Virus record (IMG/VR): IMGVR_UViG_3300042544_001590 | Coordinates: 1 to 64,000 of that record | Reading direction: 5' to 3' (one strand) | Length of the DNA: 64,000 nucleotides | Shown here: piece by piece, positions 4,477 through 64,000 of the stretch | Layout of the letters: each line of letters begins with the position of its first letter | Numbering within the stretch: position 1 is the stretch's first letter | Position numbers and translations under genes: made by a program | The notes under the pieces: generated by a model | Database searches by the model: none | Seen by the model: the letters and a program-made list of their open reading frames with translations, nothing else | What the model was told of the DNA's origin: nothing

Positions 4477-5439
4477 ATGGTTAATTTAAACGGAAAGACG
4501 ATATTGGTTACGGGAGGTGCTGGATTTATTGGAAGTAATTTTATTGAATATATTTTATCTCATTATTCTTTTTTAACTCTTATTAATATTGACAAGATGG
4601 GGATCGGTTCAAGACACCTAGAATTTAAACCAAAGCTTGACGGTAACGATTTCTTCAATATTAAAGAAGATATTAGGGGGATTTATAAGTTATATTCAAC
4701 AAACCCAATCAAAATTGATTATGTCTTCCATTTCGCAGCGGAATCTCACGTTGATAGATCGATAGCTGGTGCTTATGATTTTGTTGATAATAATGTTTTG
4801 GGGATGACCCGATTGTTGGAATGGATTAAAGAATGTCAACCACAAGCCAGAGTCATCAATATATCCACGGATGAAGTGTTTGGTCATCTGGAAAAGCATG
4901 GAGCACCTTTCAACGAGAATTGCAAATTCGCCCCCCGTAGCCCATACGCGGCATCCAAGGCATCTGCCGATCTGATCGCCAATTCGTATGTCACCACTTA
5001 TGGATTGGATATCATCACCACCCATTGTTGCAACAATTTCGGTAAACATCAGGCGGATGAAAAATTCATCCCCACGGTGATTCGGAACATGGTTTGGGGT
5101 AACAAGATTCCGGTCTATGGAACGGGAGAGAATATCCGTGAATGGATTCATGTGGACGATCATAACAAATCCCTTTTGGAAATCGCAGAGGGGGGTAGGG
5201 CTGGTTATCGTTACAATATTGGATCAAAGGTGGAGAAGACAAATCTGGAAATGATAGTTGACATTGCTGAAATTCTTGGTAAGGTAGCTGATATTGAATA
5301 CGTGGAAGACAGAAAAGGACATGATTTCCGATATGCGATTGATAGTCTCAATTACCGTAGGCAATTTGAATTGCGGGATCATTCCGAATCTTTGAGAGAG
5401 ACTGTGAACCACTATAAAGAGCAATATTCTACTAAATAA
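4477..5439 (+). CDS. rmlB: dTDP-glucose 4,6-dehydratase (extended SDR)
   Basis: VTGGAGFIGSN, HFAAESHVDRSI, ISTDEV, SPYAASKAS, EKFIP, REWIHVDDH, DRKGHDFRYA. Confidence 0.93.
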   Translation: MVNLNGKTILVTGGAGFIGSNFIEYILSHYSFLTLINIDKMGIGSRHLEFKPKLDGNDFFNIKEDIRGIYKLYSTNPIKIDYVFHFAAESHVDRSIAGAYDFVDNNVLGMTRLLEWIKECQPQARVINISTDEVFGHLEKHGAPFNENCKFAPRSPYAASKASADLIANSYVTTYGLDIITTHCCNNFGKHQADEKFIPTVIRNMVWGNKIPVYGTGENIREWIHVDDHNKSLLEIAEGGRAGYRYNIGSKVEKTNLEMIVDIAEILGKVADIEYVEDRKGHDFRYAIDSLNYRRQFELRDHSESLRETVNHYKEQYSTK

Positions 5440-5458: not shown

Positions 5459-6535
5459 ATGGACGTAAAAACAGAAGTAGTAAAAGCACGGGTTGAAAAG
5501 GGATGGAGTTATCCCATGATCTTTGACACGTATGGAGTTCCCAAAAGCACAGCCCAAGATTGGGTGAAAAAATATGCAGCAGAAAGTGATGAAGAAGAAT
5601 CCTCAACTCCTTACGAGGAATATAAACAAGGATATGTGAACGAAAATCTCCAGAGGGACAAGCCCAAGAAACCCAAGAAATCCGAAGAGGAGATTATGGA
5701 ATTCCTCTCGCAACTTGCTCCAATCCAAGTTCATAGTGGCTATACAGTAGCTCCTTCCAATCTGAATGATTATGCTGTTGTTGGGTCTGATTTCCATTTT
5801 GGGTGTCACGACGAAGCAGCTATTAATATTTTTCTCTATACCATTGAGGAATTGAAACCCAAAACAATCGTTCTCAATGGTGATACCATGGATATGCTCG
5901 CCATCTCCCGCTATCCCAAGGATATCAAAAAACAGTGGAGTCTTCAGGATGAAAGAATTGCATATCATGAATTTTTGGATAACCTCATTGCTGTTTCGGG
6001 CGGTGCTAAGATTTATGAAACGGTATCAAATCACAGCGGACAATCCATTGATGGTAGATGGAGACGCTATCTATCGGAGCGTCTTGGGGAACTCGCGTCA
6101 TTACCAGATATTACGGATAAGCTGAGTTATCAGAACGTGTTCATGGGTGATTATCAGGAGCATGTGGAGCATGTTGATTATGTTGATCTGAACGGGTTGA
6201 TTGTGACACATGGTACGACCGTGCGTGGGGCTGGGGGGGCTTCTGCTAAGGGAGAGATTGAAAAATGGACTACCAGTATCATGCATGGACATACCCACAG
6301 GATTGGAAGCTCATGCAAGAGAATACCAGCTTTTGGTAATCGCCCCGATAGTCAAATTTACGGTTTTGAGGGTGGATGTTTGGGGAGTCTTGATGCGGTT
6401 TATTCATCTACCGCAAATTGGCAACAGGGATTTAACATTGTAGCTCTCGGGGATGAATCTTTTGGTGTTGAGCAAATCATGATCAACAACGGAATTGCTA
6501 ACGTTTCCACACTTGGACAGACTATTAGGGGATAA
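5459..6535 (+). CDS. Calcineurin-like metallophosphoesterase with N-terminal HTH
   Basis: SDFH, NGD..D, SNH, THG, HGHTH motifs; YGVPKSTAQDWVKKY HTH. Confidence 0.8.
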   Translation: MDVKTEVVKARVEKGWSYPMIFDTYGVPKSTAQDWVKKYAAESDEEESSTPYEEYKQGYVNENLQRDKPKKPKKSEEEIMEFLSQLAPIQVHSGYTVAPSNLNDYAVVGSDFHFGCHDEAAINIFLYTIEELKPKTIVLNGDTMDMLAISRYPKDIKKQWSLQDERIAYHEFLDNLIAVSGGAKIYETVSNHSGQSIDGRWRRYLSERLGELASLPDITDKLSYQNVFMGDYQEHVEHVDYVDLNGLIVTHGTTVRGAGGASAKGEIEKWTTSIMHGHTHRIGSSCKRIPAFGNRPDSQIYGFEGGCLGSLDAVYSSTANWQQGFNIVALGDESFGVEQIMINNGIANVSTLGQTIRG

Positions 6536-8926: not shown

Positions 8927-9598
8927 ATGACAGGAGAAGAATGGGACAAAGACTTTAAGCAATCCTCAAAATTCATACAAGACTTGTCAATGGATTTTTC
9001 TTGGGTTGAGTGGGGAGAAGGCTCAATGAGCATATCACACGTTCCCAAGGGATGGGAGAAGATCATTCGCAATCTCTTTGGAGCGATCAACCAGTATTCC
9101 AAAACGAAAATTTATTATCTGGAAGATACTCCAATGAAGCGTTTCAAATTCTGGTGGAATGGTAAGATTTGGGATGTGTCGAAATTCGTTAGCAAGGTTC
9201 TGAAACCAACCCAAAGACTTTATCCAAGTGATAAACCACAAATGATTTTTCCTGAGATGCAGAAAAAGATTGAAGCTACCTCTTGGTGGAAATGGGAAAA
9301 TCGACTTCGAAAGTTGCTTGGTAAAATGCGATTCGATTTCACGAAATATGAGAGAACCCGATACCCCAATCCAGTCACTATAGAACAGGTGAAATCAAAA
9401 TTTGCGAATTTACGCTGTTATGTTAGTGGTGGGGATGATATTATCAGAGGTATGATCCGTTTGGCAGAATATCAAGCATCCCAAACCTGTGAAGTGACGG
9501 GCAATGCTGGTGTGTTCTGTGTCAATGAGCGGGGGTGGTATCGAACTCTTTCCAAGGCAAAAGCCAAGGAATTGAGATTCCAGCCTGTTAAAAACTAG
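8927..9598 (+). CDS. Hypothetical phage protein
   Basis: QVKSKFANLRCY...TCEVTG..G...GWYRTL C-terminal domain common in phages. Confidence 0.7.
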   Translation: MTGEEWDKDFKQSSKFIQDLSMDFSWVEWGEGSMSISHVPKGWEKIIRNLFGAINQYSKTKIYYLEDTPMKRFKFWWNGKIWDVSKFVSKVLKPTQRLYPSDKPQMIFPEMQKKIEATSWWKWENRLRKLLGKMRFDFTKYERTRYPNPVTIEQVKSKFANLRCYVSGGDDIIRGMIRLAEYQASQTCEVTGNAGVFCVNERGWYRTLSKAKAKELRFQPVKN

Positions 9599-9841
9599 GA
9601 TACAATAAGGGCATGAAATTATATAAAGTTGAGATGACGTTTGAAACAGTGGTATTGGCTGAAAGTAGCCAAGCTGCTGAAAGAGAAGCCCGTTACAACA
9701 TTGGGGAAGAAGACCCGATTGAGTGTTATATATTCGGTATCAGAGCATTGGGTGATCTACCCGATCAATGGGATGGGGATTGCATACCGTGGGGTGGTGG
9801 ACATAATGTGAAACAACATACAATTAAACAAATTTTGGAAA

Positions 9842-11587: not shown

Positions 11588-14500
11588 ATGAAGCAACCTA
11601 GAAAATTAACGCCCCCAAAAAAGGACGAACGACAATCCATTTACGTGGAAACTAAAAGCACTTGTACCCACGATTATCATGATGGTAAACGATTTGGTGA
11701 TTGGGAAAAGACGTATTCCAATAAAGTTGAGAAAATTTCCAGAAATAAGGATTTGTTGAATAAATGGAATTTTGAAGAATATAAGGTGCCGGATGAAACT
11801 TATGCTGCGTCCACACTGTATTTGGTTGTGGTGACTTATAGCTCTGGTGATTCCTTCGGGAGAAGCGAGGGAAACACATCCGTTGCGTATATCACAGAGA
11901 ATTCTGGGGAAGCCTTGGAAATTAGGGATATGATTAATGTTGGAAAAAAACCTTCCAAGGACGATCAAAAATATCAACATGGGGGATATGCACCATGGGA
12001 CGGACATTTTGAGAGAGTTAGCGATGTTGATATTGTGTTCCTTCCAGTGATGGGTTAAAAACTAGAATACAATACGGATATGAATCAACCAATAGATAAA
12101 ACAGGTGTTCACCGAACCCATTGCTGCTCAAGACATGGGTGTAAGTATGGGGAAGATAATTGTCCAGTAGTTACGGGTGAAGTTATTCAGGAATACCCTT
12201 GCGAGTATTGTGAGGAAGACCCCGCTCCAATATATCAAGTCCACTATATTCAAACTTATTTGTATTACGATAATGATAATTATCTATGTAGTAGTGATGA
12301 TGGTTCATTGGAAGAATATCTTTGTGCTGATTCCATCGAGGAGCTTTATGAGAAGATGGCAAAATGTTTGGTGGATTGGAAGATCACTGGAGAAGAAAGA
12401 TGTAAAAATGACAGTTTTGGGCTTTACGCAAAGGATACTTTTGATGTGGAATTTTCCCCCATTTATATCTATGTTGATGAATACTCCTCAGAGAAATTAA
12501 AAGCCACTAAGACCTATCAGGAAATTGGAGTTGCGCGAGACATCGCCAAGAAAAAACGCGAGGAGAAAGAAAAAGCTGATGCTCTTCGTAGGGCTGAAAA
12601 TGCAAGAATCCTAAAAGAAAAGGAAGAGAAAGCAATTTACAATAGACTCAAAAAGAAATACGAAAAATCATGAACGAACCGATCAAATACGAAAATTTGG
12701 GTGCTGAAATCTTGGCATTGCTTCGATCCAAAGCTGATGCAAAATGGGAATACTATAATCCTCACTTCTTAGTAGCAATTGCCGAAACAATTCAAGATTA
12801 TTATCAATTGGAAGACGAGGTTGTATGGGATTGGATTCAGGATATGGCGGGAGCATAAAATTATGATTAAATTAACAAAAATAGATATTAATCCCAACAG
12901 TGAAGTGATTCAAGCTTCCAATGTTGAGGAATACCGCATTGACCAAGAGCGTGGCACATGGGGTCAATTCTTTGAAGGAAAATCTCCTCCCGTGGACTAT
13001 TGGATCGTGGGAGAGCTTATTGGAGAAATCCAAGTTGGGAAGGCTATTCTCATTGACCGTTGGAATCGCAATGGGGTGGTGATTCGGGGAACCATGCATA
13101 CATCTGAAGTGAAGAAGCTTGAGGAGAACGATGGAGTAACCTATATCACAACCGCAAACAGTCTGTATAAGATGGAGCAAGTGGATGATGAGGATATTTT
13201 GAATTATGAACGAGAAATGCTTCAACTGCAATCGTGATGCCGTATGGTCTTACATGCCGGGAGCGGAATATGCTTGTGATGAATGCGTTCCCCGTGGATG
13301 CTCATGTAATTTTGAGCCAAAGGATGGGGATTGGGAAAATGAAGACCCTACAAATTGGGAAGAACGTGTGGGGGAAGATGGGAGAAAATACCCATGCTGC
13401 GAATGGATGACTTTCGAAAAATGAAAAAGAAATTAATCAATAACGAACAGGAATATAGAGAATTTGTATTCCTACTTCTCAATCATCATGATATTGATAT
13501 TTGGGAAGGTTGTGATATGGATCGACTTAACAGGGCGTTTGACATGTTTGACTCGCAACCCACGGGAAAGATGAGCGAAGAGCAATCAGAATTGTTGAGA
13601 TATTATTTTGAGTGTAAGGACAATCCCAAGCTAAATGAATTAACAGAACTCAAGGAATCCCTTGAATATATTGAAACGTATTATCTTGAGCAGTGTTTCG
13701 GCGTTGTCATCAAACATGACTGTTGGGATACTGATGAAGATGGTAATGATGTTGATGAAGATGGGAATATTATACCCGATGACTCATCCACTCCAGAAGC
13801 TCTAGTATTTGAAGATTGGGTGGGGGGATTAACATATCCATTTCTGATTGTTTATTGGTTCGCCAGCGGTTTTGATAGACTTGGAAAAAATTCAATCTGC
13901 GTTTTAGATTTTGTCGAGTTGAAAGATTTTAAAAACTAGGTTACAATAACCCCATGCACAAATTTATCAAAACAGACGATTGGCAATACATTTTTGACAA
14001 TTATGAATCGGTATATCTCGATGGGTTGAAAGGGAGATTCCTGATCCGTAGTTGGAGAATCGATGAGAACAGTCTTCATGATGGTTTGAATGACATGGCA
14101 AGAGCCTACCAAACCGCTCAACGCCAAGACAGGGAATGGGATGAGAGGGTGTGGTTTCCGTTTCTGGATGAGATCAAGGCAAGGGCTGTTGATAACAAGG
14201 TGATTCTCCATGCCAAACCCACCCATGAATATGGGGGAAAACAAGATCAATGGTGGGAATATGAATATTCAAACACCAGCCCTCGTTATGGGTGGGGTTA
14301 CTCCTTCAATTGGGTTGGAGAACCCGAAGAAAAGATTAATCACGATTTGGGACAAAAGCTTTATGAATTGGATCGCTATCAAAGGAAATTCGGAAATCGT
14401 GTGTTCATGCTTCAAAAGCTGCTTGAGAATTATCTGTTGAAATATGTCTATCGTATCTATAATTACGAATGGCTTGACAAGAACCAATTCTCCGGTAAGA

Positions 14501-16457: not shown

Positions 16458-16895
16458 ATGAAAATTGAAATCACCACGGAGGAGAAACAGAAAATTCTCA
16501 AATTCTCCACAGACATCAGACTAAAATTTGATGATGGGGAAGTTGAACCCATTCATAATTCAAAGGAATCCAAAGATTTTGTTCGTGAATTTCTAAAGAG
16601 TCGTGGAATCGGAAAACCGAGGGTTTATGAACAGGGAATCTATGCTTTTGGTGATGTTGGGATGCACACTGACAATCTCTCCCCAAAATCTGCAATGACC
16701 ATGTGTTTATTGATTTCCGGTAGTGGTAAATTGTTCGCTTGGGATGGTAAAAAGGTAAATGAATGTCGTGTCAACAAAGGAGATGGTGTTATTTTCGATT
16801 TCAATCTCCCCCACTCATTTGAAGCTGATAAAACATGCCAAGCATTTCTAGTGGACATTCCAAAAAAATATAAGAAAAATTTACTGAATGAGTGA
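16458..16895 (+). CDS. Cupin / 2OG-Fe(II) oxygenase-like protein
   Basis: MHTD ... GDGVIFDFNLPHS (HxD...H). Confidence 0.5.
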   Translation: MKIEITTEEKQKILKFSTDIRLKFDDGEVEPIHNSKESKDFVREFLKSRGIGKPRVYEQGIYAFGDVGMHTDNLSPKSAMTMCLLISGSGKLFAWDGKKVNECRVNKGDGVIFDFNLPHSFEADKTCQAFLVDIPKKYKKNLLNE

Positions 16896-17991
16896 TATGA
16901 AACTCCCCGACACTGAACAATTTAATTTTAAAGATGTCACCATTGCTGGGGATGACTGTTGGCTGATTACACCATCCAATATGGCTACCAAATGGACTGA
17001 CGACAATGCACGATTTCGTTCATGTATTGTTCGTAAGTCGGATAACTTTGTAGTGTCGCAAGGATTTTCCAAATTTACCAACTTTGGGGAGAAGCCTGAT
17101 TTTCAACCATGGGATAATTCATGGAAGATTGAAGCAATACACAAATTAGACGGAAGTCTTTTGATCGTTTCAAAGTATAAAGGGGAACTTATCATAAGAA
17201 CCCGTGGAACTGTTGATGCTCGTCAAATGGCTAATGGTCATGAGATTGATCTTCTTATAAAGAAATATCCATTCTTTTTCAATTTCTTCACCAATCATAC
17301 TCCCCCAACAATGACTCAATCTATATTGTTTGAGTGGACTACCCCCAAAAACATAATTGTGATCAGAGAACATGAAACTCCCACATTGACATTAGTTGGT
17401 GTTGCATCACATGATGTATATGAAACATATTACGCTGGTCAAGAATGGTTGGATGATTTCGCCAAAGTATATGGTCTTACCCGTCCTGAAAAGTATGAAT
17501 ACAATTCCATTGAGGAGTGCATCCTTGATGTATCTGCTTGGAAAGGAAAGGAAGGAGTGGTTTTATACTCTCCCAATGGTCAAACATTAAAGAAAATCAA
17601 AGCAAGCCTCTATTGCGAACTTCATAAAATCGCAACGGGAATGCGAACCATTTCCAATGTGCTTGATGTGTTCATGGAGTCTCCCCGATTTGTGGAATAC
17701 CAAGATTTTTATAATTTCCTCTGTAACTCACTTGATTTTGAAATCGCGGAACGTGTCAAAGATGATATCGCCAAAATCACGGAAGCATACGGCAAATTCA
17801 TCCATTCCGTCAACACCATTGAACGTGCCATGGGATACATCTCCAAGCTGGACTCCCGTAAGAAGCAAGCAATGGCTATTCAGGAGCATTGGGACGGCTG
17901 GATGGTTCCGGTTAGCTTTTCATTGCTTGACAACAAGCCAATCGATGATAAGCTGGTGAAGAAATCAATGGAGAAGCTACTGAATCTATGA
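16888..17991 (+). CDS. RNA ligase 1 (T4 Rnl1-like)
   Basis: KFTNFGE, KLDGSLLI (motif I), FEW, KEGVVL (IV), KIK (V). Confidence 0.8.
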   Translation: MSDMKLPDTEQFNFKDVTIAGDDCWLITPSNMATKWTDDNARFRSCIVRKSDNFVVSQGFSKFTNFGEKPDFQPWDNSWKIEAIHKLDGSLLIVSKYKGELIIRTRGTVDARQMANGHEIDLLIKKYPFFFNFFTNHTPPTMTQSILFEWTTPKNIIVIREHETPTLTLVGVASHDVYETYYAGQEWLDDFAKVYGLTRPEKYEYNSIEECILDVSAWKGKEGVVLYSPNGQTLKKIKASLYCELHKIATGMRTISNVLDVFMESPRFVEYQDFYNFLCNSLDFEIAERVKDDIAKITEAYGKFIHSVNTIERAMGYISKLDSRKKQAMAIQEHWDGWMVPVSFSLLDNKPIDDKLVKKSMEKLLNL

Positions 17992-18949: not shown

Positions 18950-19093
18950 TTTTTAATATGGACAAGAAAGTAAAAATTCATAAATTTTGGATACCTGCAA
19001 CATCTACTGTTGGGGTATCAAGAGATAGGCTTTTCGTTGCAAAGGCTGATTATGATAGAGTGATAAAGCGTATTAAAGAACTTGAAGAAAAAC

Positions 19094-19741
19094 ATGATTA
19101 AAATTAAGAAAAAACGCAAGGATTACGATAAAATCCTATTCATTTCAGACACGCACTTTGGACATGACAAGCCGTTCCTATGGGAGCCAAGGGGATTCCA
19201 ATCTGCCAAAGATCATGATGAATGGATTCAGGATCAGATTGATTCCATTTCTCCTGAGAGTCTGCTTATTCACGTTGGCGATGTGGGCTTGTCAGTTGGG
19301 GCAGAGCGCATCAAAGACTTTATGCTAACATTCCCCTGTGAAACTCTGATGGTGAGGGGCAACCACGATTCAGGAGTTCAACAACTCTATCAAGAGCATC
19401 TACCGGAAGGTTTTCAGAATTGTGAATTGTATCCAATTCGTATTACGCCAAACATTACGTTGTTGGGTTATGAATTCCTATTGGATATTGATCGTGATCA
19501 ATTCTATGTGAGGCACATGGCAGCGTTGGTTTACCCCTTCTGTAATAAAAATTATTCACATATCTGCGGTCACTCCCATGGCAATCTAAAGCAAGCCAAT
19601 CCTGATGGGAATGGTTTTGGTAAGATGCTTGATGTGGGGGTGGAGAATGCCAAGAGGTATAATGGAACCGCTTTCTTCAAGCTGGAGGAAATTGTGGATA
19701 TCATGGCTAGGAAAGAAACATCGAAATTTGATCATCACTGA
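19094..19741 (+). CDS. Metallophosphoesterase
   Basis: SDTHFGH, HVGD, RGNHD, CGHSHG, LDVGVE. Confidence 0.88.
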   Translation: MIKIKKKRKDYDKILFISDTHFGHDKPFLWEPRGFQSAKDHDEWIQDQIDSISPESLLIHVGDVGLSVGAERIKDFMLTFPCETLMVRGNHDSGVQQLYQEHLPEGFQNCELYPIRITPNITLLGYEFLLDIDRDQFYVRHMAALVYPFCNKNYSHICGHSHGNLKQANPDGNGFGKMLDVGVENAKRYNGTAFFKLEEIVDIMARKETSKFDHH

Positions 19742-35640: not shown

Positions 35641-38300
35641 AAACTAGAATACACTGATCCCATGCCCGACATTGAAATTAACGGAACAAAATTGTGCGTA
35701 TCTTTGGAAACCATCATCAATGGAATGTCCAAGGAACAGAAGAGAGAAGTCCTATCATGGCTTGCCACCGATGGGGAAGTCATGGAATCCGTGGTGGATC
35801 ATATTCTGGGAAGGGATGAGCAAGGATGGTCAACGGGTGATCCAAACCGTTGCCAACAAATCCTTGGGGAAGTGGAGGATTTCCATCTTGCTGATGTCAG
35901 ATATAACTGGAAACCTTGGGATGAAATCAAGCAGAAATTGAAGAACATTCGTGCTGATGAGCGTCTGTATTGGGTTCTCTATCATCAAATTGACGCACAA
36001 ACGAGTAGTATGGTGTTCAATGAATTACGGAGACTTGGGGTGGAATCCAATTACACAACCAAAGAGGCTGATGAGGATATTGCCACGATCCATGAGATTA
36101 TCAAGGATACGTTCAAACAGATGGCTAAAGATAAGGTTAAAAACTAGAATACAATAGCAACATGTTTAAGCTACCACAAATAATCATTGGCTGTATCCTA
36201 TTCTTTATCGGCATGTCCATCCCTCTGGGATTCTTCAGCCTGTTTGGTATGTTATTGGCACTTGTTGGCACGTTCTTTATCTCCCGTCCTTTCGCATTGG
36301 ATAGCGGATTTGGGAATACTCCCATGTTCTTCCTGTTGGGCATGTTCGTGTTTATCCCCTCGTTCTTTTTAACACGAAAGACTTTCATTGAATTTGGTAT
36401 GGATGACTTAACAATCGGGGCAATCCGTCTCACACTTTGTATGGTGGGGGGTGTGCTTGCCTTTCTCTCAATCTCAAAATCAAAATAATATGCAAGAATT
36501 CATAGCTTATAGCAACATGGTAATCGGATCACTTTCAATCACTGGAGCATTAATATTGCAAACCAAAAATTGGCAAAGTTCATTCGTATTCAAGGTTATT
36601 CCAATGTTTAGTGGTTTGATACTTGTGATTAATGGACTGTATCTTATCGGTTTACGGTTTTAAAAACTAGACAATAATCACAACATGACACTGGAAGAAT
36701 TCCAACAAACCAAACAGAAAGAACTTGCAAATCTCATTCCATGTCGTAAGATCGCTTACGAAGAGGGAACGGATCACAAGGTTGTTCTAAGCAATGACAA
36801 GTTCTGGGACTTATTCGCATTCTTCAAGAATCAATGGCACTACATTACAACAATTAAGATATAACATGACAAAGTATCAAAAATTATGGTTTGAAGAAGG
36901 TTATTATGATAACCAACAAGGGGAACATCCCGAAGCATTTTGTCAGGAAAAGTGGATGAAGTCCATATATGACTGTGGTTGGGGTGGTGAACAATTTACA
37001 ATGATTGTGGAACACTTTCCATTCTACAAACAAGGAGCAACAAAAGCATATAACGAAAAAAACAAATAACATGGCTAATAAAAAAACAAGGGCAAGTCGG
37101 GCAAGAGGATGGTGCAGCACACTGGATGAGCAAACCAATGGCAACAAAATCTTCAAGGGAGAGATTTGTGATACTGCATGGAACGCGAAAGCATCCAACA
37201 AGCGAGCGCGAAAGGTCTATGGTAGGATATCACAACAAGGCAAGGACTGATGGGTAGCATGTTTGACAACCGCAAGATTCTCCATGGCCTTCCAAAGGAT
37301 GGTCAGAAGATCGAAGCCATTACTAACAAAACCAATTCGTGGTTTCTATCAGTGGTGGAAGATACTAAAAAGCTGAAGATTGGAAAGGAATATACTGTTC
37401 TCAAGACGGAACTCAATTCATCCAGTTCTTATGTGTGGCTTGAGGAATTTGGAAAAGATGTATTCTTTAATATACATAGCTTTGAATGGGAACTCCCGAA
37501 TCTTGATCCAAATGATCTGATTGGGTTTTTCGTTTCCGATATGAATACCATTCATCACAAATATGGGTGGGGTGTTCAAGTGGGGGAGAATATCAGACAT
37601 GAGGGAAATCCCATGATCGTGGTGAAGTGTGAGAATAAGGAACATGTCGATTACATCACAAGCGTAGAATTTAAAAACTAGAATACAATAAAGACATGAA
37701 ATACACAGTAATTTGGGAAGACCGCTGGCAATCAGGATCACATCATCATTGTATCACAAAGAAGACTTGGGTGGAAGCTAATTCCATTGAAGACCTTATG
37801 AAAGAATATGGTGATTATGCCCGATTCATTTTTGAGGGACATATCCTAACTTTGGGGGAAGAATTCAATCAGGAATTGGTTGATGTGATTGTTTAAAAAC
37901 TAGAATACAATATCAATATGAATAACGAACAACAAATAAACGAAGCCCTTCAATGGCTACAATCGACGGGTCAATCTTTGGTTGACTTCACTGGCGAACA
38001 ATCTCCTCTCTACTGTCAGGAAGTTCTCAATTGGACATTCTATGGTAATATGATAACGGTAATCATCGGCATCATTTGGATTATTGGTTCTCTGTTTCTA
38101 ATCAAACCGTGTATTAAAGCTTGGAATTTTGAATATGGTTATTGCAACAAAGGAGCAGCAATTTCTGTATCTACCTCTTTGGCGTTGGTGATTGCAGGTG
38201 CATTCATACCAATTACTATTCTCAGTGTTGTTGATATGGTTAAAATTAAGGTTGCACCACGAATGGTATTGGTTGAGCATTTTCAACAAAAATTAAAGTA

Positions 38301-59464: not shown

Positions 59465-59626
59465 AACATGAAACAACTTGCAACTCTCGCCTTCTATGCG
59501 AAATACGCCGGATGGCAATCCTATCACAAGTCCATGCTTCCCCAAGTCAAAGCCCTAACACGCAAGGGATTTCTGGAAATGAATGAGCATGGGCAAGCGC
59601 GGTTCACGGGAAAGTGTCAAGATTAA
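59222..59626 (+). CDS. Lar-family restriction-alleviation-like protein fused in frame to the resident gene (ATG 59468)
   Basis: LLPCPFCGSEA...VEC....C...WNAR. Confidence 0.65.
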   Translation: MSDTEKLAEATDSGLLQPRLVRLLPCPFCGSEARIGQGDGWPGETVVECSNDENCRAQMSCIWGEKNETELWNARANPQPNNMKQLATLAFYAKYAGWQSYHKSMLPQVKALTRKGFLEMNEHGQARFTGKCQD

Positions 59627-59642
59627 AAAACTAGCCTAGAAT

Positions 59643-59717
59643 GCGCTTGTAGCTCAGTGGTTAGAGCGAGCCTCTCATAAAGGCTGGGTCGATGGTTCAA
59701 TCCCATCCGAGCGCACC
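59643..59717 (+). tRNA. tRNA with CAU anticodon (elongator Met or Ile2)
   Basis: GCGCTTG/CGAGCGC, AGCCT-CTCATAA-AGGCT, ends ACC. Confidence 0.88.
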
Positions 59718-59737
59718 TTTAAAAACTAGCATAGAAT

Positions 59738-59814
59738 GGATGCGTAGCTCAACTGGATAGAGCAATTCCCTTCTAAGGAATAGGTTGTGGGTTCAAATCC
59801 CGCCGCGTCCACCA
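59738..59814 (+). tRNA. tRNA-Arg(UCU)
   Basis: GGATGCG/CGCGTCC-A-CCA, ATTCC-CTTCTAA-GGAAT. Confidence 0.92.
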
Positions 59815-59838: not shown

Positions 59839-62800
59839 ATGACCCACAAGGAACACCTGCTCAAAACACAATTCGGATTCATTGCCACCAAGGAAGATGA
59901 GGAAAAGCTTATCGCAGAGGATCGCTTCACACCCGTTCTGGTGCGCTGTGGCAATGGAAGGTTCCGTTGCGCGGTGCAGGATTTGGCACACTTCGTCAAG
60001 GTGATCAATGCCAGCAAAGAGGACTATGTGAGGGACGCATCCGTGACCCTATAAAAACTAAACCATAATAACACCATGTTCGACAAACCAATTGCAACCC
60101 GCCCTTACTCATCCCATCCTGATGATTCCTATCTCCAAGTGGTTCTCCACAAGAACTTCAAGGGGGAATATGTCACCCATATCCAGAATCTCCATACAGG
60201 CGGATTCGTGCATGGCCATTACTTTGGCAAGGACACGGATGCGCTGGAAAAGGCAACCCAAGACTTCAAGAACCGATAAAAACTAAACCATAATCACACC
60301 ATGACCAAGAAATACCTGATAATCAAGCTGGAAGCCAAGGAAAGCCAAATTCCCGATGGTTACAATATGACAACCCGGACGGAATATTTCGGGGTTACAA
60401 CCGGATATCCCTTTCCCCATGACACTCTGGAAGAGGCGGAAGAGGAATTGGCACGGAATATTTACAAGTTTGAGCAATACACGATCATTCCGGTCTATAC
60501 CTACGAATAAAAACTAGATTAAGATAACACCATGACCGAAACACAAGCAAGGCAAGCTCTGGATGCGTGGACAATCAAGACCTATCTGGATTGGGTCAAT
60601 AATTACCTGACCATTGAAAAGATGGCAAGCGATTACAATCTCTCCCCAAAAGGAATGAAAGCAATCCTTGAAAAAGGCAAGGAACTTTATGAAGGATAAA
60701 AAACTAGAATAAGATAAATCCATGCATTACACAATCAATATCTCCCTCAATGGGTATCACTTATTTGCAACAGCGGATCATAGCTTGTGCGATACCCAAG
60801 AATACATCAGATGCTTCGCCATCTTGAAAGCGAAATTTCCTGAAAGCGAAGGATATAAAGTGGATGGAACCCTATGGAAGACAATCGGTAACTCGGTGAA
60901 TGATTCCGGTGATAAAAACTAGAATAAGATAAAGCCATGCAATACAACCTACTGATTGATTGGGGAAACGGAGAGAAAAGCTTTCAGGAATTTGACAACC
61001 TGATCCTAGCTCAAAAAGCAATGGAAAACTCCAAGGACAATCCCGAAATCGAATTTATCATTCTGGTAAAGAGCGAAATGCTGGGATTCTGGTCAAACCC
61101 ATGCAGCGGAGAAGAGGACTGATAAAAACTAGCGTAAGATCAGGACATGAAACAATTCAACCTATTCTGGAAGTTCTCAGGTATTAAGAACTACGACCCC
61201 CACCAAACCATCACCGCAAGGAATCTCCCGGAAGCCTTGGAAATAGCTGCAAACGACCATGGTTTCCTGATTAGGGGAGAAACCCTAAAACGCAACGGCA
61301 ACCGTAGAATTGAATTTTGGGGATATGCCGGGGAAGGAACGATGAAAGTCCCCGCACCGATTATCCAAGGGGTGATTGCCAATGCTTAAAAACTAGCGTA
61401 AGATCAGGACATGACAATCAACGGAATCCAAATTAAGACAACCCTTTCCAACACCAAAAAACCGGATTGGAGCAGGGGCAATCATAACCATTACAAGGTG
61501 CGGATTTCCAAGGGAAGGAATAGCGTATCCTTTGATTACTTTGACAGCATCCACAATACGCAAAATAATGAGGAAGCGGACATGAAAGATATCCTTTTCT
61601 GCTTTGCATCCGATGTGAGCAACGGGCGGGAGGAATTCGATGATTCCATGATGACTCCCAAGCAATACCGAGAATGCAAGCGTGTGGCCAATGCTGCGGA
61701 AAGGATGGGCATTTCCAACGAAACACTGGCGGAATGGTGGCAGCTTTAAAACAAAGGACGCGGGAATCAGTGTGACAAAATGACGCACCTCCACCTAAGT
61801 CTCTGATAGTGTGACAAAATGACGCACTCAAGGTGCGACAAAATGACGCACTGTGACAAAATGACGCACTTTAGGAATAGAAGGATACGAAAGGATAGGG
61901 GAAATAACTTTTAAAAACTAGCGTAAGATTTCAGCATGACGAAATTACTCGACAAAGAACACGTGAAAGCAATGGTAAAAGCTCTGGAAAGCGCGGGCTT
62001 GCCTTTGGAAAAGGATTGGCAAAGCGGGACTGTTCGGGCATACATCAACGGCAAGGAAATCTTCGCCGCTCTGGAGAAGGGCAAGAACCAGCCTTGGATT
62101 GTGCGCCATGTTGATGATCTGTTCGCATAATGTTCCTAATCAGAATGTTCCTTGATATGACATAATCGACAAAGCCAAGTTATATCAAGAGGTTTGGAAT
62201 AATCTTTATGATGCATTTCCTCGCCTATCTCACCACATATACAATTTTCGCGCAATATCTTACCACGTTTTAAATATACATTTGCTGTTGATCGTGCATT
62301 AGCTTTCAATCGCTGAATATCACTAAGTTCTGAATGTTTGGTTCTATTGATTCGCATCCATTCAGCACGGCATGATTTACACCAACGTTGATTATTAACC
62401 CGCTCATTCACTTTACATTTATTACAATATGTCATAATAATACTTAGAATATTGTTCCACATTTGTATAGTGGAACAAGTGATGTTTAAAAACTAGCCTA
62501 GACTGATCACATGAAGGAACTGCCACCGTGCCACAAAGATTCCCCCCTCCATGATAAATGGCTTGTCATTGTCGCTCAAATGGAGGATGAGGGATGCGAT
62601 ACATCCGATGCCCAATCCATAGCCGATATTGAGGTGTTTAAAAACTAGATTAAGATTTAGCTACCAATACAACGCCGGAGCCGCTGCGGAGCGGAGTCCC
62701 CCGCAAAGGGACATATAAAAAAGCTTTTGTCGTTCGATTCCCGGATGCATACGGGATAGAGCAAGAGGACTAGCTATCCTTGGACAAGACGAAAGCGGAG

Positions 62801-64000
62801 GGTTCGAAACCTTCCTCGGGCTTCCTTTTCTTAAAAACTAAACCAGAATAACACCATGACGAGACAATATACAAACCGACTGCTGGAAATGATCGAAGAT
62901 GGTCTGCTTGACAAGGACAACGTGATCATGGCTTGTGTCAAATACATGTCGGAGGACGATGTGGAGGACATGATGAAATGCAACGAATTTCTGGAGGACG
63001 AAGAAGAGGAGGATGAGGACGAATAAAAACTAGCGTAAGATAGCCTCACCATGAAACGATACGCCATAAGATCAAAACAAAAGGAAATAGGATATATCAA
63101 ATTTACAGTTCCCACCATTGAAGTATTACATTTCAATTCTCCTTTCTTTCTTGGATCGTGGTGTGCTGACAATGGAACACTGTGGACATGTTTGGATGAT
63201 GGGAAAAACATTTTTGAGAATGAGAATGAAGCCAAGGAAAGATTGGCCGAAATCATCAAGGAATTGTTCGCTTAAAAACTAGACCAGAATAACACCATGA
63301 TAATCACATACACCGCAAGATACGCAGATGGTGAAAAAGTCACGTTCACGGGAAAATTCGATGACCTGAAAGACTTTGGGAATTTCGCTCACCGTGAGAG
63401 CAAAAGGCCGAATTACAATGGTGATATGTTCATCATCATTAGCATCGTTTAAAAACTAGCCTAAGATTATCGCACCATGAAACAACTCATCCTTGACACC
63501 CTCGCCGCGTTCTTCCTGTTCGCGTTCACTCCCATCGTCCTGTTCATCCTGATCGGATAACCTTTATAAAAACTAGCGTAAGCTCGTAGCACCATGAAAC
63601 TGAAAATAACAAGCACCGCACCAGTCGCAGTCGAAACCTATGTTGAGGGTAATATTGTCCTCGGGCATTTCGAGTACAACGAGGGTGATTCCGCCCTTGG
63701 GGTCAATCCCCACTTTGTCCTTGTCGATGAAGTGTCGGATGACTTCCCAATCCTTTGGGAAGGGCAGGAAGTGACCATTCACAACGGGTGGTTCATCTTC
63801 GATGACGTTCACTTCGGAGAAGTGAAATTCAAGTTCGCCGGATATTAAACCAACCCCGAAAGGGGTTCAATCCCCCTTATAAAAACTAGCCTAGACTGAT
63901 CTCGTAACCAACACCAACCAACACCATGACCAACAAACAAATCATCGCAAAATTCGTGCAAGGCGCAACCAAGGGCAAGAACAGCCTGAAAAGCATGTTC
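59839..64000 (+). CDS. Array of very small module-headed hypothetical genes (59839, 60076, 60301, 60532, 60722, 60937, 61147, 61411, 61936, 62511, 62856, 63051, 63297, 63477, 63594, 63926 partial)
   Basis: Each start follows a module, mostly at the fixed distance. Confidence 0.7.
61771..61869 (+). repeat. Four 18-bp direct repeats TG(T/C)GACAAAATGACGCAC in a non-coding gap
   Basis: Copies at 61771, 61810, 61834, 61852. Confidence 0.92.
62136..62435 (-). CDS. Small HNH endonuclease-like protein
   Basis: CNKC..CKSC, then CICG...HHKDYSKPLDITWLCRLCHIKEH; TAAGTA 5 nt before ATG. Confidence 0.8.
   Translation of the reverse strand: MTYCNKCKVNERVNNQRWCKSCRAEWMRINRTKHSELSDIQRLKANARSTANVYLKRGKILRENCICGEIGEEMHHKDYSKPLDITWLCRLCHIKEHSD
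62674..62825 (+). ncRNA. Unknown ~150-nt RNA with tRNA-like T arm and acceptor-like closure
   Basis: GCCGGAG/CTCGGGC, GAGGG-TTCGAAA-CCTTC, GCTTTTGTC/GACGAAAGC, GTCCC/GGGAC, TCCCG/CGGGA; follows module at 62639. Confidence 0.6.

Follow-up and report, generated by a model that had tools for sequence, protein, structure and literature searches.

Does a short locus in an uncultured lake phage related to T4, which lies behind its own repeat module, encode a tRNA with a giant variable region, or a mimic of one? The earlier note raised these two possibilities from the sequence alone, and we examined them within the window, the 64,000-nt stretch of viral DNA that was analyzed, and in the complete 207,489-bp genome to which it belongs. 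Transfer RNA shape is among the most constrained in biology and gene finders depend on that constraint. At its native length the locus is missed by standard tools, as ARAGORN in default, intron and tmRNA modes found nothing, and neither did a search with all 4227 Rfam models at gathering threshold or at E <= 10.

To determine if the proposed structure is real, we folded the locus and compared each structural statement of the earlier note with the result. Every one was confirmed, including the acceptor-like closure with a single G.G mismatch, the two hairpins in D- and anticodon-like positions, the 9-bp helix enclosing two further hairpins, and the T-arm, and no + strand ORF of 30 aa or more was found between 62649 and 62855. 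The minimum free energy is -61.5 kcal/mol, with z = -2.8 against dinucleotide shuffles (4 of 200 fold as well), and the acceptor pair probabilities are 0.85-0.96. Energy alone is only modest evidence, and the decisive evidence is comparative. The coordinates of the parts are collected below.

Table. Features of the RNA locus and of the other loci mentioned in the text. Positions are those of the window unless stated otherwise.
Feature	Position	Strand	Description
Repeat module	62638-62656	+	(T/A)T-AAAAACTA(G/A)-NN-TAnAAT, here TT AAAAACTAG AT TAAGAT; TAAAAACTAG..TAAGAT at 62639-62656; presumed promoter part of a PeSL-like cassette boundary
5' leader	62657-62673	+	17 nt between the module and base 1 of the acceptor stem; ends in AUACAAC
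Acceptor stem, 5' strand	62674-62680	+	GCCGGAG; pairs with 62815-62821 in 6 of 7 positions; G.G mismatch at 62677/62818
D-arm-position hairpin	62681-62694	+	5 bp in the window, loop GCGG (form N-C-G-G); directly abuts the acceptor stem
Anticodon-type arm	62696-62712	+	5-bp stem, 7-nt loop CCGCAAA; GCA at 62703-62705, followed by A37 and A38
Linker	62713-62722	+	AUAUAAAAAA; A-rich, single-stranded; start of the 84-nt variable-region insert
Inserted domain	62723-62796	+	9-bp closing helix (62723-62731 with 62788-62796) enclosing hairpin 62732-62762 (loop GAUGCAUA) and hairpin 62765-62781 (loop CUAGCUA)
T-arm	62798-62814	+	Stem GAGGG/CCUUC, loop UUCGAAA, G53-C61 type closing pair
Acceptor stem, 3' strand, plus discriminator	62815-62822	+	CUCGGGC plus U (62822); no CCA encoded
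3' trailer	62823-62830	+	UCCUUUUC; pyrimidine/U-rich; a weak terminator-like match covers 62800-62823 plus the tail; next module at 62831-62849, then the ATG of the next gene at 62856
Alternative tRNA-Ala(agc)	62739-62822		Drawn by relaxed ARAGORN; rejected
Rnl1-type RNA ligase	16888-17991		Phage-encoded
CCA-adding-type enzyme	genome 76607-78133		CCA-adding-family protein of the phage
T4 species 1 RNA (rnaC)	AF158101 70908-71046		139 nt

We then asked whether the structure is conserved elsewhere. The RNA is absent from 32 related viral records searched with covariance models, indicating that it is dispensable for the group, but it was found in two further phage lineages from metagenomes, designated L090/L093 and L152/L153, with scores of 99 bits for L090, 101 bits for L093 and 121 bits (E = 1.7e-28) for L152/L153. 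Both lineages differ from the window copy by about a third of their bases, with pairwise identities of 65-68%, and both fold independently into the same architecture. No further copy was found by blastn of phage GenBank records, by four pattern scans of viral contigs, or in five further large contigs of the Kyano_Gp96 neighbourhood, and 48 pattern hits in GTDB were mostly chance matches in coding sequence. A hit in contig L096 was spurious, being a terminator hairpin followed by an ordinary tRNA-Gln. The earlier note had counted this as a third RNA of its sort, however covariance models of this RNA find a single copy in the complete genome, and the claim of two earlier such RNAs in the window is not supported as paralogy.

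Across the three lineages 95.9% of pair cells stay paired and 18 of 43 pairs show compensatory double changes, a level that 0 of 500 shuffles reached and for which slid controls give 0-3. It is important to note that only three lineages are known, that two of the four aligned sequences are near-identical, that the alignment used for the pair counts was fitted to the model, and that part of the closing helix can be aligned in two registers, which could inflate its count by up to 3 pairs. The mismatched acceptor position is C-G in both other lineages, giving 7/7 pairs there. In the D-position hairpin four pairs never vary, the fifth is kept only in the window, and the GG of the loop is conserved in all copies. 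The four helices of the inserted domain show 5, 1, 4 and 3 pairs with changes on both sides, and the T-stem shows 2 pairs with double changes and 1 with a one-sided change while its loop is invariant. The linker is A-rich in all lineages and unpaired in all folds, and the loop cores AUGCAU and UAGCU of the insert are likewise invariant.

These results bear on the possibility that the locus is a decaying tRNA pseudogene, a fusion of tRNA fragments, a tmRNA-like gene, or merely the stem-loop or terminator part of the cassette boundary. In favor of such readings, ARAGORN at 60-90% thresholds can draw an alternative tRNA-Ala(agc), T-arm-like hairpins do occur as bare stem-loops before other modules, and by direct reading a GCU-started frame runs from 62723 to a UAG whose last base is 62773. 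However, pseudogenes do not accumulate 18 compensatory pairs, and the acceptor pairs of the alternative fold have zero probability while its 5' strand belongs to the covarying hairpin 62739-62756, which has 4 compensatory pairs. The two halves of the RNA are not significantly similar, as their alignment score lies inside the shuffle distribution, and thus an origin by tandem duplication of two tRNA-like halves is not supported. A weak similarity of 62721-62742 to tRNA-Leu of relatives is at chance level (E about 2). No reading frame is conserved, since 2-nt length differences in the other lineages lie inside the closing helix, pair 3:70 is C-G and not the G.U of tmRNA, and ARAGORN's tmRNA mode and the Rfam tmRNA families were negative. 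We regard this group of explanations as very unlikely.

To identify which tRNA the core resembles, we compared it with the cysteine identity rules, in which U73 and G34-C35-A36 are the major elements (PMC9976931). U is at the discriminator position in all copies, C3-G70 is present, and GCA with A37 and A38 is kept in all lineages. In lineage L152, which was found without any pattern constraint on the anticodon-type arm, the stem differs by 3 compensatory pairs while the loop reads CUGCAAA, so GCAAA is kept and U33 is present. When the insert was replaced in silico by 4-5 nt of its own linker, ARAGORN at default called tRNA-Cys(gca) in L090, L093 and L152, and in the window copy at a 95% threshold (-ps95). 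Several features depart from bacterial and phage tRNA-Cys, as the window and L090/L093 lineages have C33 in place of the universal U33, the covariation-supported fold leaves no nucleotides 8-9 between the acceptor stem and the D-type hairpin, and pair 2:71 is C-G rather than the G2-C71 listed for bacterial cysteine identity.

The large insert sits exactly in the variable-loop position, where class I tRNAs have 4-5 nt. A review gives 4-5 nt or more than 10 nt for natural tRNAs (PMC7609411). Class II and noncanonical tRNAs (tRNA-Ser/Leu/Tyr/Sec, selC* tRNA-Cys and allo-tRNAs) also have an extra arm emerging between the anticodon arm and the T-arm, and selC* tRNAs show that CysRS-type charging can coexist with a long variable arm (PMC7609411). 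Known variable arms are single hairpins, probably of the order of 10-25 nt, whereas here a 10-nt linker precedes a 74-nt three-way domain, and the acceptor/T geometry is the ordinary 7/5 and not 8/5, 8/4 or 9/3. This shape has not been described for any known tRNA.

Because shortening the insert yields a sequence that ARAGORN accepts, and because the phage encodes an Rnl1-type RNA ligase, we considered whether the 84 nt are an intervening sequence that is cut out, with the halves rejoined to give an ordinary tRNA-Cys of about 70 nt. No group I, group II or small self-cleaving ribozyme model matched at E <= 10, ARAGORN's intron mode was negative, and no bulge-helix-bulge motif was seen at the insert boundaries on reading the fold. 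The insert is in the variable loop, and variable-loop introns appear not to be known in bacteria or phages. The insert's own helices and loops are under strong structural selection, which fits a retained domain, although an intron could also be structured. We consider this explanation unlikely.

We also tested whether the RNA is a diverged member of the T4 rnaC (species 1 RNA) family, the nearest known analogue, which has no Rfam family. Both are small tRNA-like RNA genes of T4-type phages in tRNA-rich early regions next to a homing endonuclease gene, and both share a 7-position acceptor-like closure, an A-rich linker, a long extra arm directly before a UUCGAAU-type T-arm, and then U. The single-sequence model R1 scored T4 rnaC at 19.2 bits, above the true T4 tRNAs. 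However, a covariance model built from five Tevenvirinae rnaC genes scored T4 rnaC at 160 bits and L090 at only 9.7 bits (E = 0.31), and found nothing significant in the window locus or the genome, while the three-sequence model R2 did not report rnaC at E <= 1. Further, rnaC has one long hairpin where this RNA has D-type and anticodon-type arms, has two U.U mismatches in its closure, and in T4 is part of a long tRNA precursor transcript, whereas here each copy has its own module. The model test rejects rnaC homology, and we hold membership in this family to be improbable.

We conclude that the locus is a real, selectively maintained RNA gene of about 148 nt, and the reading we favor, with some confidence, is a tRNA-Cys(GCA)-type cloverleaf with a conserved 84-nt insert in the variable loop, carried as an independent cassette between two repeat modules of an uncultured freshwater T4-like myovirus. 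There is no expression evidence, as all 24 sequencing runs that contain the sequence are DNA, and we infer that the RNA is transcribed from the module in front of it. Leaders of 11-17 nt ending in AUAC(C)AA(N) occur in all three lineages and similar trailers occur in L093 and L152, and we infer that both ends are trimmed like those of a tRNA precursor, the leader by RNase P-type processing by analogy. We further infer that the RNA receives CCA, possibly from the phage's own CCA-adding-type enzyme, and that its anticodon and discriminator are read by the host cysteinyl-tRNA synthetase. There is no phage-encoded CysRS. We consider charging with cysteine likely and ribosomal decoding uncertain, given C33 in two of the three lineages and an insert several-fold larger than any known variable arm. 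The insert, with its two invariant palindromic loops, most likely adds a second function to a tRNA body, either a binding platform or protection.

It remains possible, though we think it doubtful, that this is a tRNA-shaped RNA that is never aminoacylated or used in decoding, where the tRNA body serves only as a stable, RNase P/Z-processed scaffold or as a decoy, for instance titrating a host tRNA-binding protein or a tRNA-cleaving defense nuclease. The C33, the unusual D-arm junction and the size of the insert would suggest this, and the invariant palindromic loops suggest a specific partner. Host defenses that cut tRNA variable loops, and phage tRNAs that counter them, are documented (PMC13096335), and T4 rnaC shows that tRNA-like stable RNAs without a known decoding role exist in T4-type phages. 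Against this, the GCAAA loop and U73 are kept while neighboring stems change, which is what recognition by CysRS would demand and is not required of a mere scaffold, and no partner protein or conserved neighboring gene exists, since the neighbors differ in all three lineages. If the RNA is a mimic, it joins rnaC, whose function has been unknown for about 50 years, as a second and more interpretable example, and unlike rnaC it offers a concrete handle in CysRS.

More tentatively, the RNA could be a chargeable, possibly decoding, phage tRNA-Cys whose variable loop has been expanded into an autonomous 74-nt RNA domain, which would make it a natural tRNA-scaffolded RNA and define a third structural class of tRNA beyond class I and class II. 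The added domain would then give the phage something a plain tRNA cannot, such as immunity to, or titration of, host nucleases that cut tRNA variable or anticodon loops, or a docking site for a phage or host factor through the AUGCAU and UAGCU loops. The RNA keeps the cysteine identity set and the acceptor/T minihelix but tolerates, and conserves, an insert larger than the rest of the molecule, and if it is charged or decodes, it stretches what synthetases, EF-Tu and the ribosome are known to accept, which is relevant to engineered tRNAs and tRNA scaffolds.

The 10-mer of the module occurs 93 times in the window against 0.28 expected, all on the + strand, and 114 times in the genome, and all three lineages carry the RNA between two modules. 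As in the PeSL cassettes (promoter-early stem-loop motifs) of T4-like myoviruses (PMC2839356, PMC4122927), a short repeated intergenic motif bounds nearly every small early gene, relatives differ in gene content and gene order at these motifs, and the RNA is present or absent as a unit, although promoter activity is inferred and not shown. The motif sequence is unrelated to published PeSLs as far as we can tell, it lacks a -35 box, it supplies stop codons for the preceding ORF, it abuts mature tRNA 5′ ends directly, and here the cargo is an RNA gene. Annotation of tRNAs in phage metagenomes misses such genes, and three further uncalled long tRNA-like genes were seen in relatives.

The complete 207,489-bp virus genome, of which the window forms the first 64 kb, has direct terminal repeats and belongs to a T4-like myovirus with a family-B DNA polymerase, tail sheath and portal. 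The polymerase is only about 30% identical to cultured pelagiphage and cyanophage enzymes, and the phage recurs in lake-water metagenomes. The left arm of the genome is an array of small genes, each of which is preceded by a module of the form (T/A)T-AAAAACTA(G/A)-NN-TAnAAT. We found 93 copies in the window against 0.28 expected, all on the + strand, and 114 copies in the genome. The module supplies the stop codon of many preceding ORFs (the TAA or TAG within TAAAAACTAG), and the next ATG lies about 6 nt after TAnAAT with no Shine-Dalgarno sequence and no -35 box, and therefore the genes are leaderless or nearly so. The modules resemble the PeSL cassettes that mediate modular shuffling in T4-like phages (PMC2839356, PMC4122927), and that they act as promoters is inferred. 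In this regard, tRNA-Met and tRNA-Arg begin at the first base after the TAnAAT hexamer of a module. If the hexamer were a sigma-70 -10 box, transcription would start inside the tRNA. Either the start site is right after the hexamer (phage-type promoter geometry), or these tRNAs are read from upstream. The coordinates of the features discussed here are collected in the table.

Coordinates of the RNA gene, its surroundings and related features.
Feature	Sequence	Coordinates	Strand
Module array (93 sites)	window	7577-63889	+
Module in front of the RNA	window	62638-62656	+
GC-rich RNA stretch	window	62674-62822	
Partial tRNA-Ala drawn by ARAGORN at a 60% threshold	window	62739-62822	
HNH-type endonuclease gene, 108 aa (PHROG 2340)	window	62136-62462	-
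Sites where tRNA-Met and tRNA-Arg follow a module	window; record G008	59626-59643 and 59720-59738; about 37487-37504	
T-arm-like and minihelix hairpins before modules	window; homologous sites in records G004 and G009; record G010	63848-63880; plus-strand 9144-9166 and 9632-9654 (41798 and 9662 in oriented coordinates); about 14116-14155	
Rnl1-type RNA ligase (PHROG 562) and metallophosphoesterase	window	16888-17991 and 5459-6535	
G-run after a module	genome, outside the window; also record G003	67565-67600	
Second tRNA cluster	genome	72695-75472	
Uncalled 78-nt cloverleaf between tRNA-Lys and tRNA-Glu	genome, outside the window	74969-75046	
CCA-adding-enzyme-family protein, 508 aa	genome, outside the window	76607-78133	
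Long tRNA-like gene	record G003	19083-19195	-
Long tRNA-like gene	record G007	12963-13066	+
Long tRNA-like gene	contig L152	3774-3865	+
rnaC	T4 (L097)	4909-5047	

One module is followed by no open reading frame. Instead, a 17-nt leader is followed by the GC-rich stretch, an 8-nt U-rich trailer, and the next module. This stretch folds exactly as an earlier note had described from the sequence. The fold has an acceptor-like closure carrying one G.G mismatch, a 5-bp hairpin with a 4-nt loop, a 5-bp hairpin with loop CCGCAAA, a 9-bp helix enclosing two hairpins, and a T-arm with loop UUCGAAA; an A-rich linker precedes the 9-bp helix. The fold energy is -61.5 kcal/mol with z = -2.8, and acceptor pair probabilities reach 0.96, although energy alone is modest evidence. 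ARAGORN in default, intron and tmRNA modes and all 4227 Rfam models report nothing, even at E <= 10. Only at a 60% threshold does ARAGORN draw a different, partial tRNA-Ala, and that fold has zero pair probability in the full transcript.

To determine if related phages carry the RNA, viral contigs were scanned for the module, which gave ten related records, and a flanking protein gave 18 more. These records share the modules and syntenic tRNA clusters, but none holds the RNA, whether tested by blastn, nhmmer or a covariance model. Among metagenome contigs, near-identical strains carry the RNA, one strain lacks the adjacent HNH gene but keeps the RNA, and a more distant relative has a different gene order without the RNA. 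So the RNA behaves as a dispensable cassette. The HNH gene lies on the opposite strand about 200 nt upstream of the RNA cassette, and because a strain variant joins 62136 directly to 62470 with only 'AC' between, the gene is a free-standing indel, which parallels SegB beside rnaC in T4.

A single metagenome pattern scan then found a diverged copy on contig L090, and exact-protein look-ups found its strain variants L093 and L092. The pattern had fixed the CCGCAAA hairpin and the T-loop, and we therefore looked for an unbiased copy. Homologs of the Kyano_Gp96-family protein next to L090 led to contigs L152 and L153, where a three-sequence covariance model of the RNA (R2) finds a third lineage at 121 bits, E = 1.7e-28. 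The three lineages are 65-68% identical, and each fold computed on its own gives the same architecture.

We next asked if the structure is supported by covariation. On a four-sequence alignment, 95.9% of pair cells are standard pairs and 18 of 43 pairs show changes on both sides. None of 500 shuffles (0 of 500) reach the observed values, and sliding the 3′ partner by 1-3 columns gives 0-3 such pairs and 39-55% pairing. Every helix except the acceptor stem and the first hairpin carries compensatory changes, and the acceptor mismatch of the window copy is a C-G pair in both other lineages. It is important to note that the alignment was fitted to the model, that two rows are near-identical, and that the closing helix of the insert can be aligned in two registers, which may inflate its count by up to three pairs. 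Even when discounted, the structure is clearly under selection, and a pseudogene or chance fold is excluded.

In the unbiased lineage the second hairpin reads CCCGC-CUGCAAA-GCGGG, where three stem pairs have changed compensatorily while the loop keeps G34-C35-A36-A37-A38 and has the canonical U33, whereas the window copy and L090 have C33. The base after the acceptor stem is U in every copy. U73 and the GCA anticodon are the major cysteine identity determinants, and C3-G70, also present, is a minor one, although pair 2:71 is C-G instead of the listed G-C (PMC9976931). We replaced the 84-nt insert by the first 4-5 nt of its own linker and added CCA. Default ARAGORN then calls tRNA-Cys(gca) in L090, L093 and L152, and the window copy passes at a 95% threshold. 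The insert therefore sits precisely in the variable loop of an otherwise acceptable tRNA-Cys. None of the related phage records or the window genome has an ordinary tRNA-Cys. The insert itself consists of a 10-nt A-rich linker, a closing helix and two hairpins, of which the loop cores AUGCAU and UAGCU are invariant and each self-complementary. No reading frame is conserved in the insert, and no ribozyme or intron model matches.

In all three lineages the RNA has a module in front, an 11-17-nt leader ending in AUAC(C)AA(N), no encoded CCA, a pyrimidine-rich trailer and a module behind, while the neighboring genes are unrelated between lineages. The genome encodes a protein whose best matches are CCA tRNA nucleotidyltransferases, below the curated cut-offs, directly after the second tRNA cluster. 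It also encodes the Rnl1-type RNA ligase, which with the metallophosphoesterase is a possible tRNA repair pair, as in T4. The genome has no CysRS.

The nearest described RNA is T4 species 1 RNA (rnaC, 139 nt), which lies beside tRNA-Arg and the SegB homing endonuclease gene and has no known function. We aligned five Tevenvirinae rnaC genes and found a consensus structure with a 7-position acceptor-like closure, a long hairpin, an A-rich linker, a 10-bp extra arm, a T-arm and a following U, with 19 covarying pairs, which is the same ground plan. However, a model built from that alignment does not match the present RNA, and model R2 does not report rnaC, indicating that the two are analogous and not members of one family. 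T4 rnaC has no Rfam family, its best match is a sub-threshold tRNA-Sec hit at 17.5 bits, and at least one GenBank record annotates it as tRNA-Lys; its consensus fold could seed a family. Reviews of non-canonical tRNAs list nothing with a variable region of this size or complexity (PMC7609411), and tmRNA is excluded.

We conclude that the RNA is a conserved tRNA-Cys-type fold with a conserved add-on domain. Without RNA data and with only three lineages known, we infer that it is transcribed from its module, undergoes tRNA-type end processing, receives CCA and is recognized by CysRS, a reading that we consider more likely than not. Within this reading, decoding on the ribosome is uncertain because of C33 and the bulk of the insert. 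We also cannot exclude the main rival, which we regard as possible but unlikely, that the RNA is a non-charged mimic or scaffold whose insert is the active part. Recent work shows that host defenses cut tRNA variable loops and that phage tRNAs with distinctive loops counter them (PMC13096335), which makes a protective or decoy role for an altered variable region a reasonable, though hypothetical, lead.

Other elements were observed in this phage group. Bare T-arm-like hairpins (GGGG-TTCAATC-CCCC) and longer acceptor-plus-T "minihelix" hairpins sit just before some modules, and the minihelix stems show compensatory differences between relatives. These are possible 3′-end structures that mimic tRNA. 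At the end of the module array, a module is followed by a conserved G-run (GGGTGGGGGTGGGATGGGGGGTGG), a G-quadruplex-like motif. In the second tRNA cluster, the 78-nt stretch that ARAGORN does not call folds as a cloverleaf with a T-arm (CTTCG-TTCGATC-CGAAG), at a place where relatives have tRNA-Asn. Finally, three other long tRNA-like genes (about 90-113 nt) have a perfect acceptor stem and T-arm but extra sequence in the anticodon/variable region, and default ARAGORN calls none of them. Long irregular tRNA-like genes seem recurrent in this phage group.
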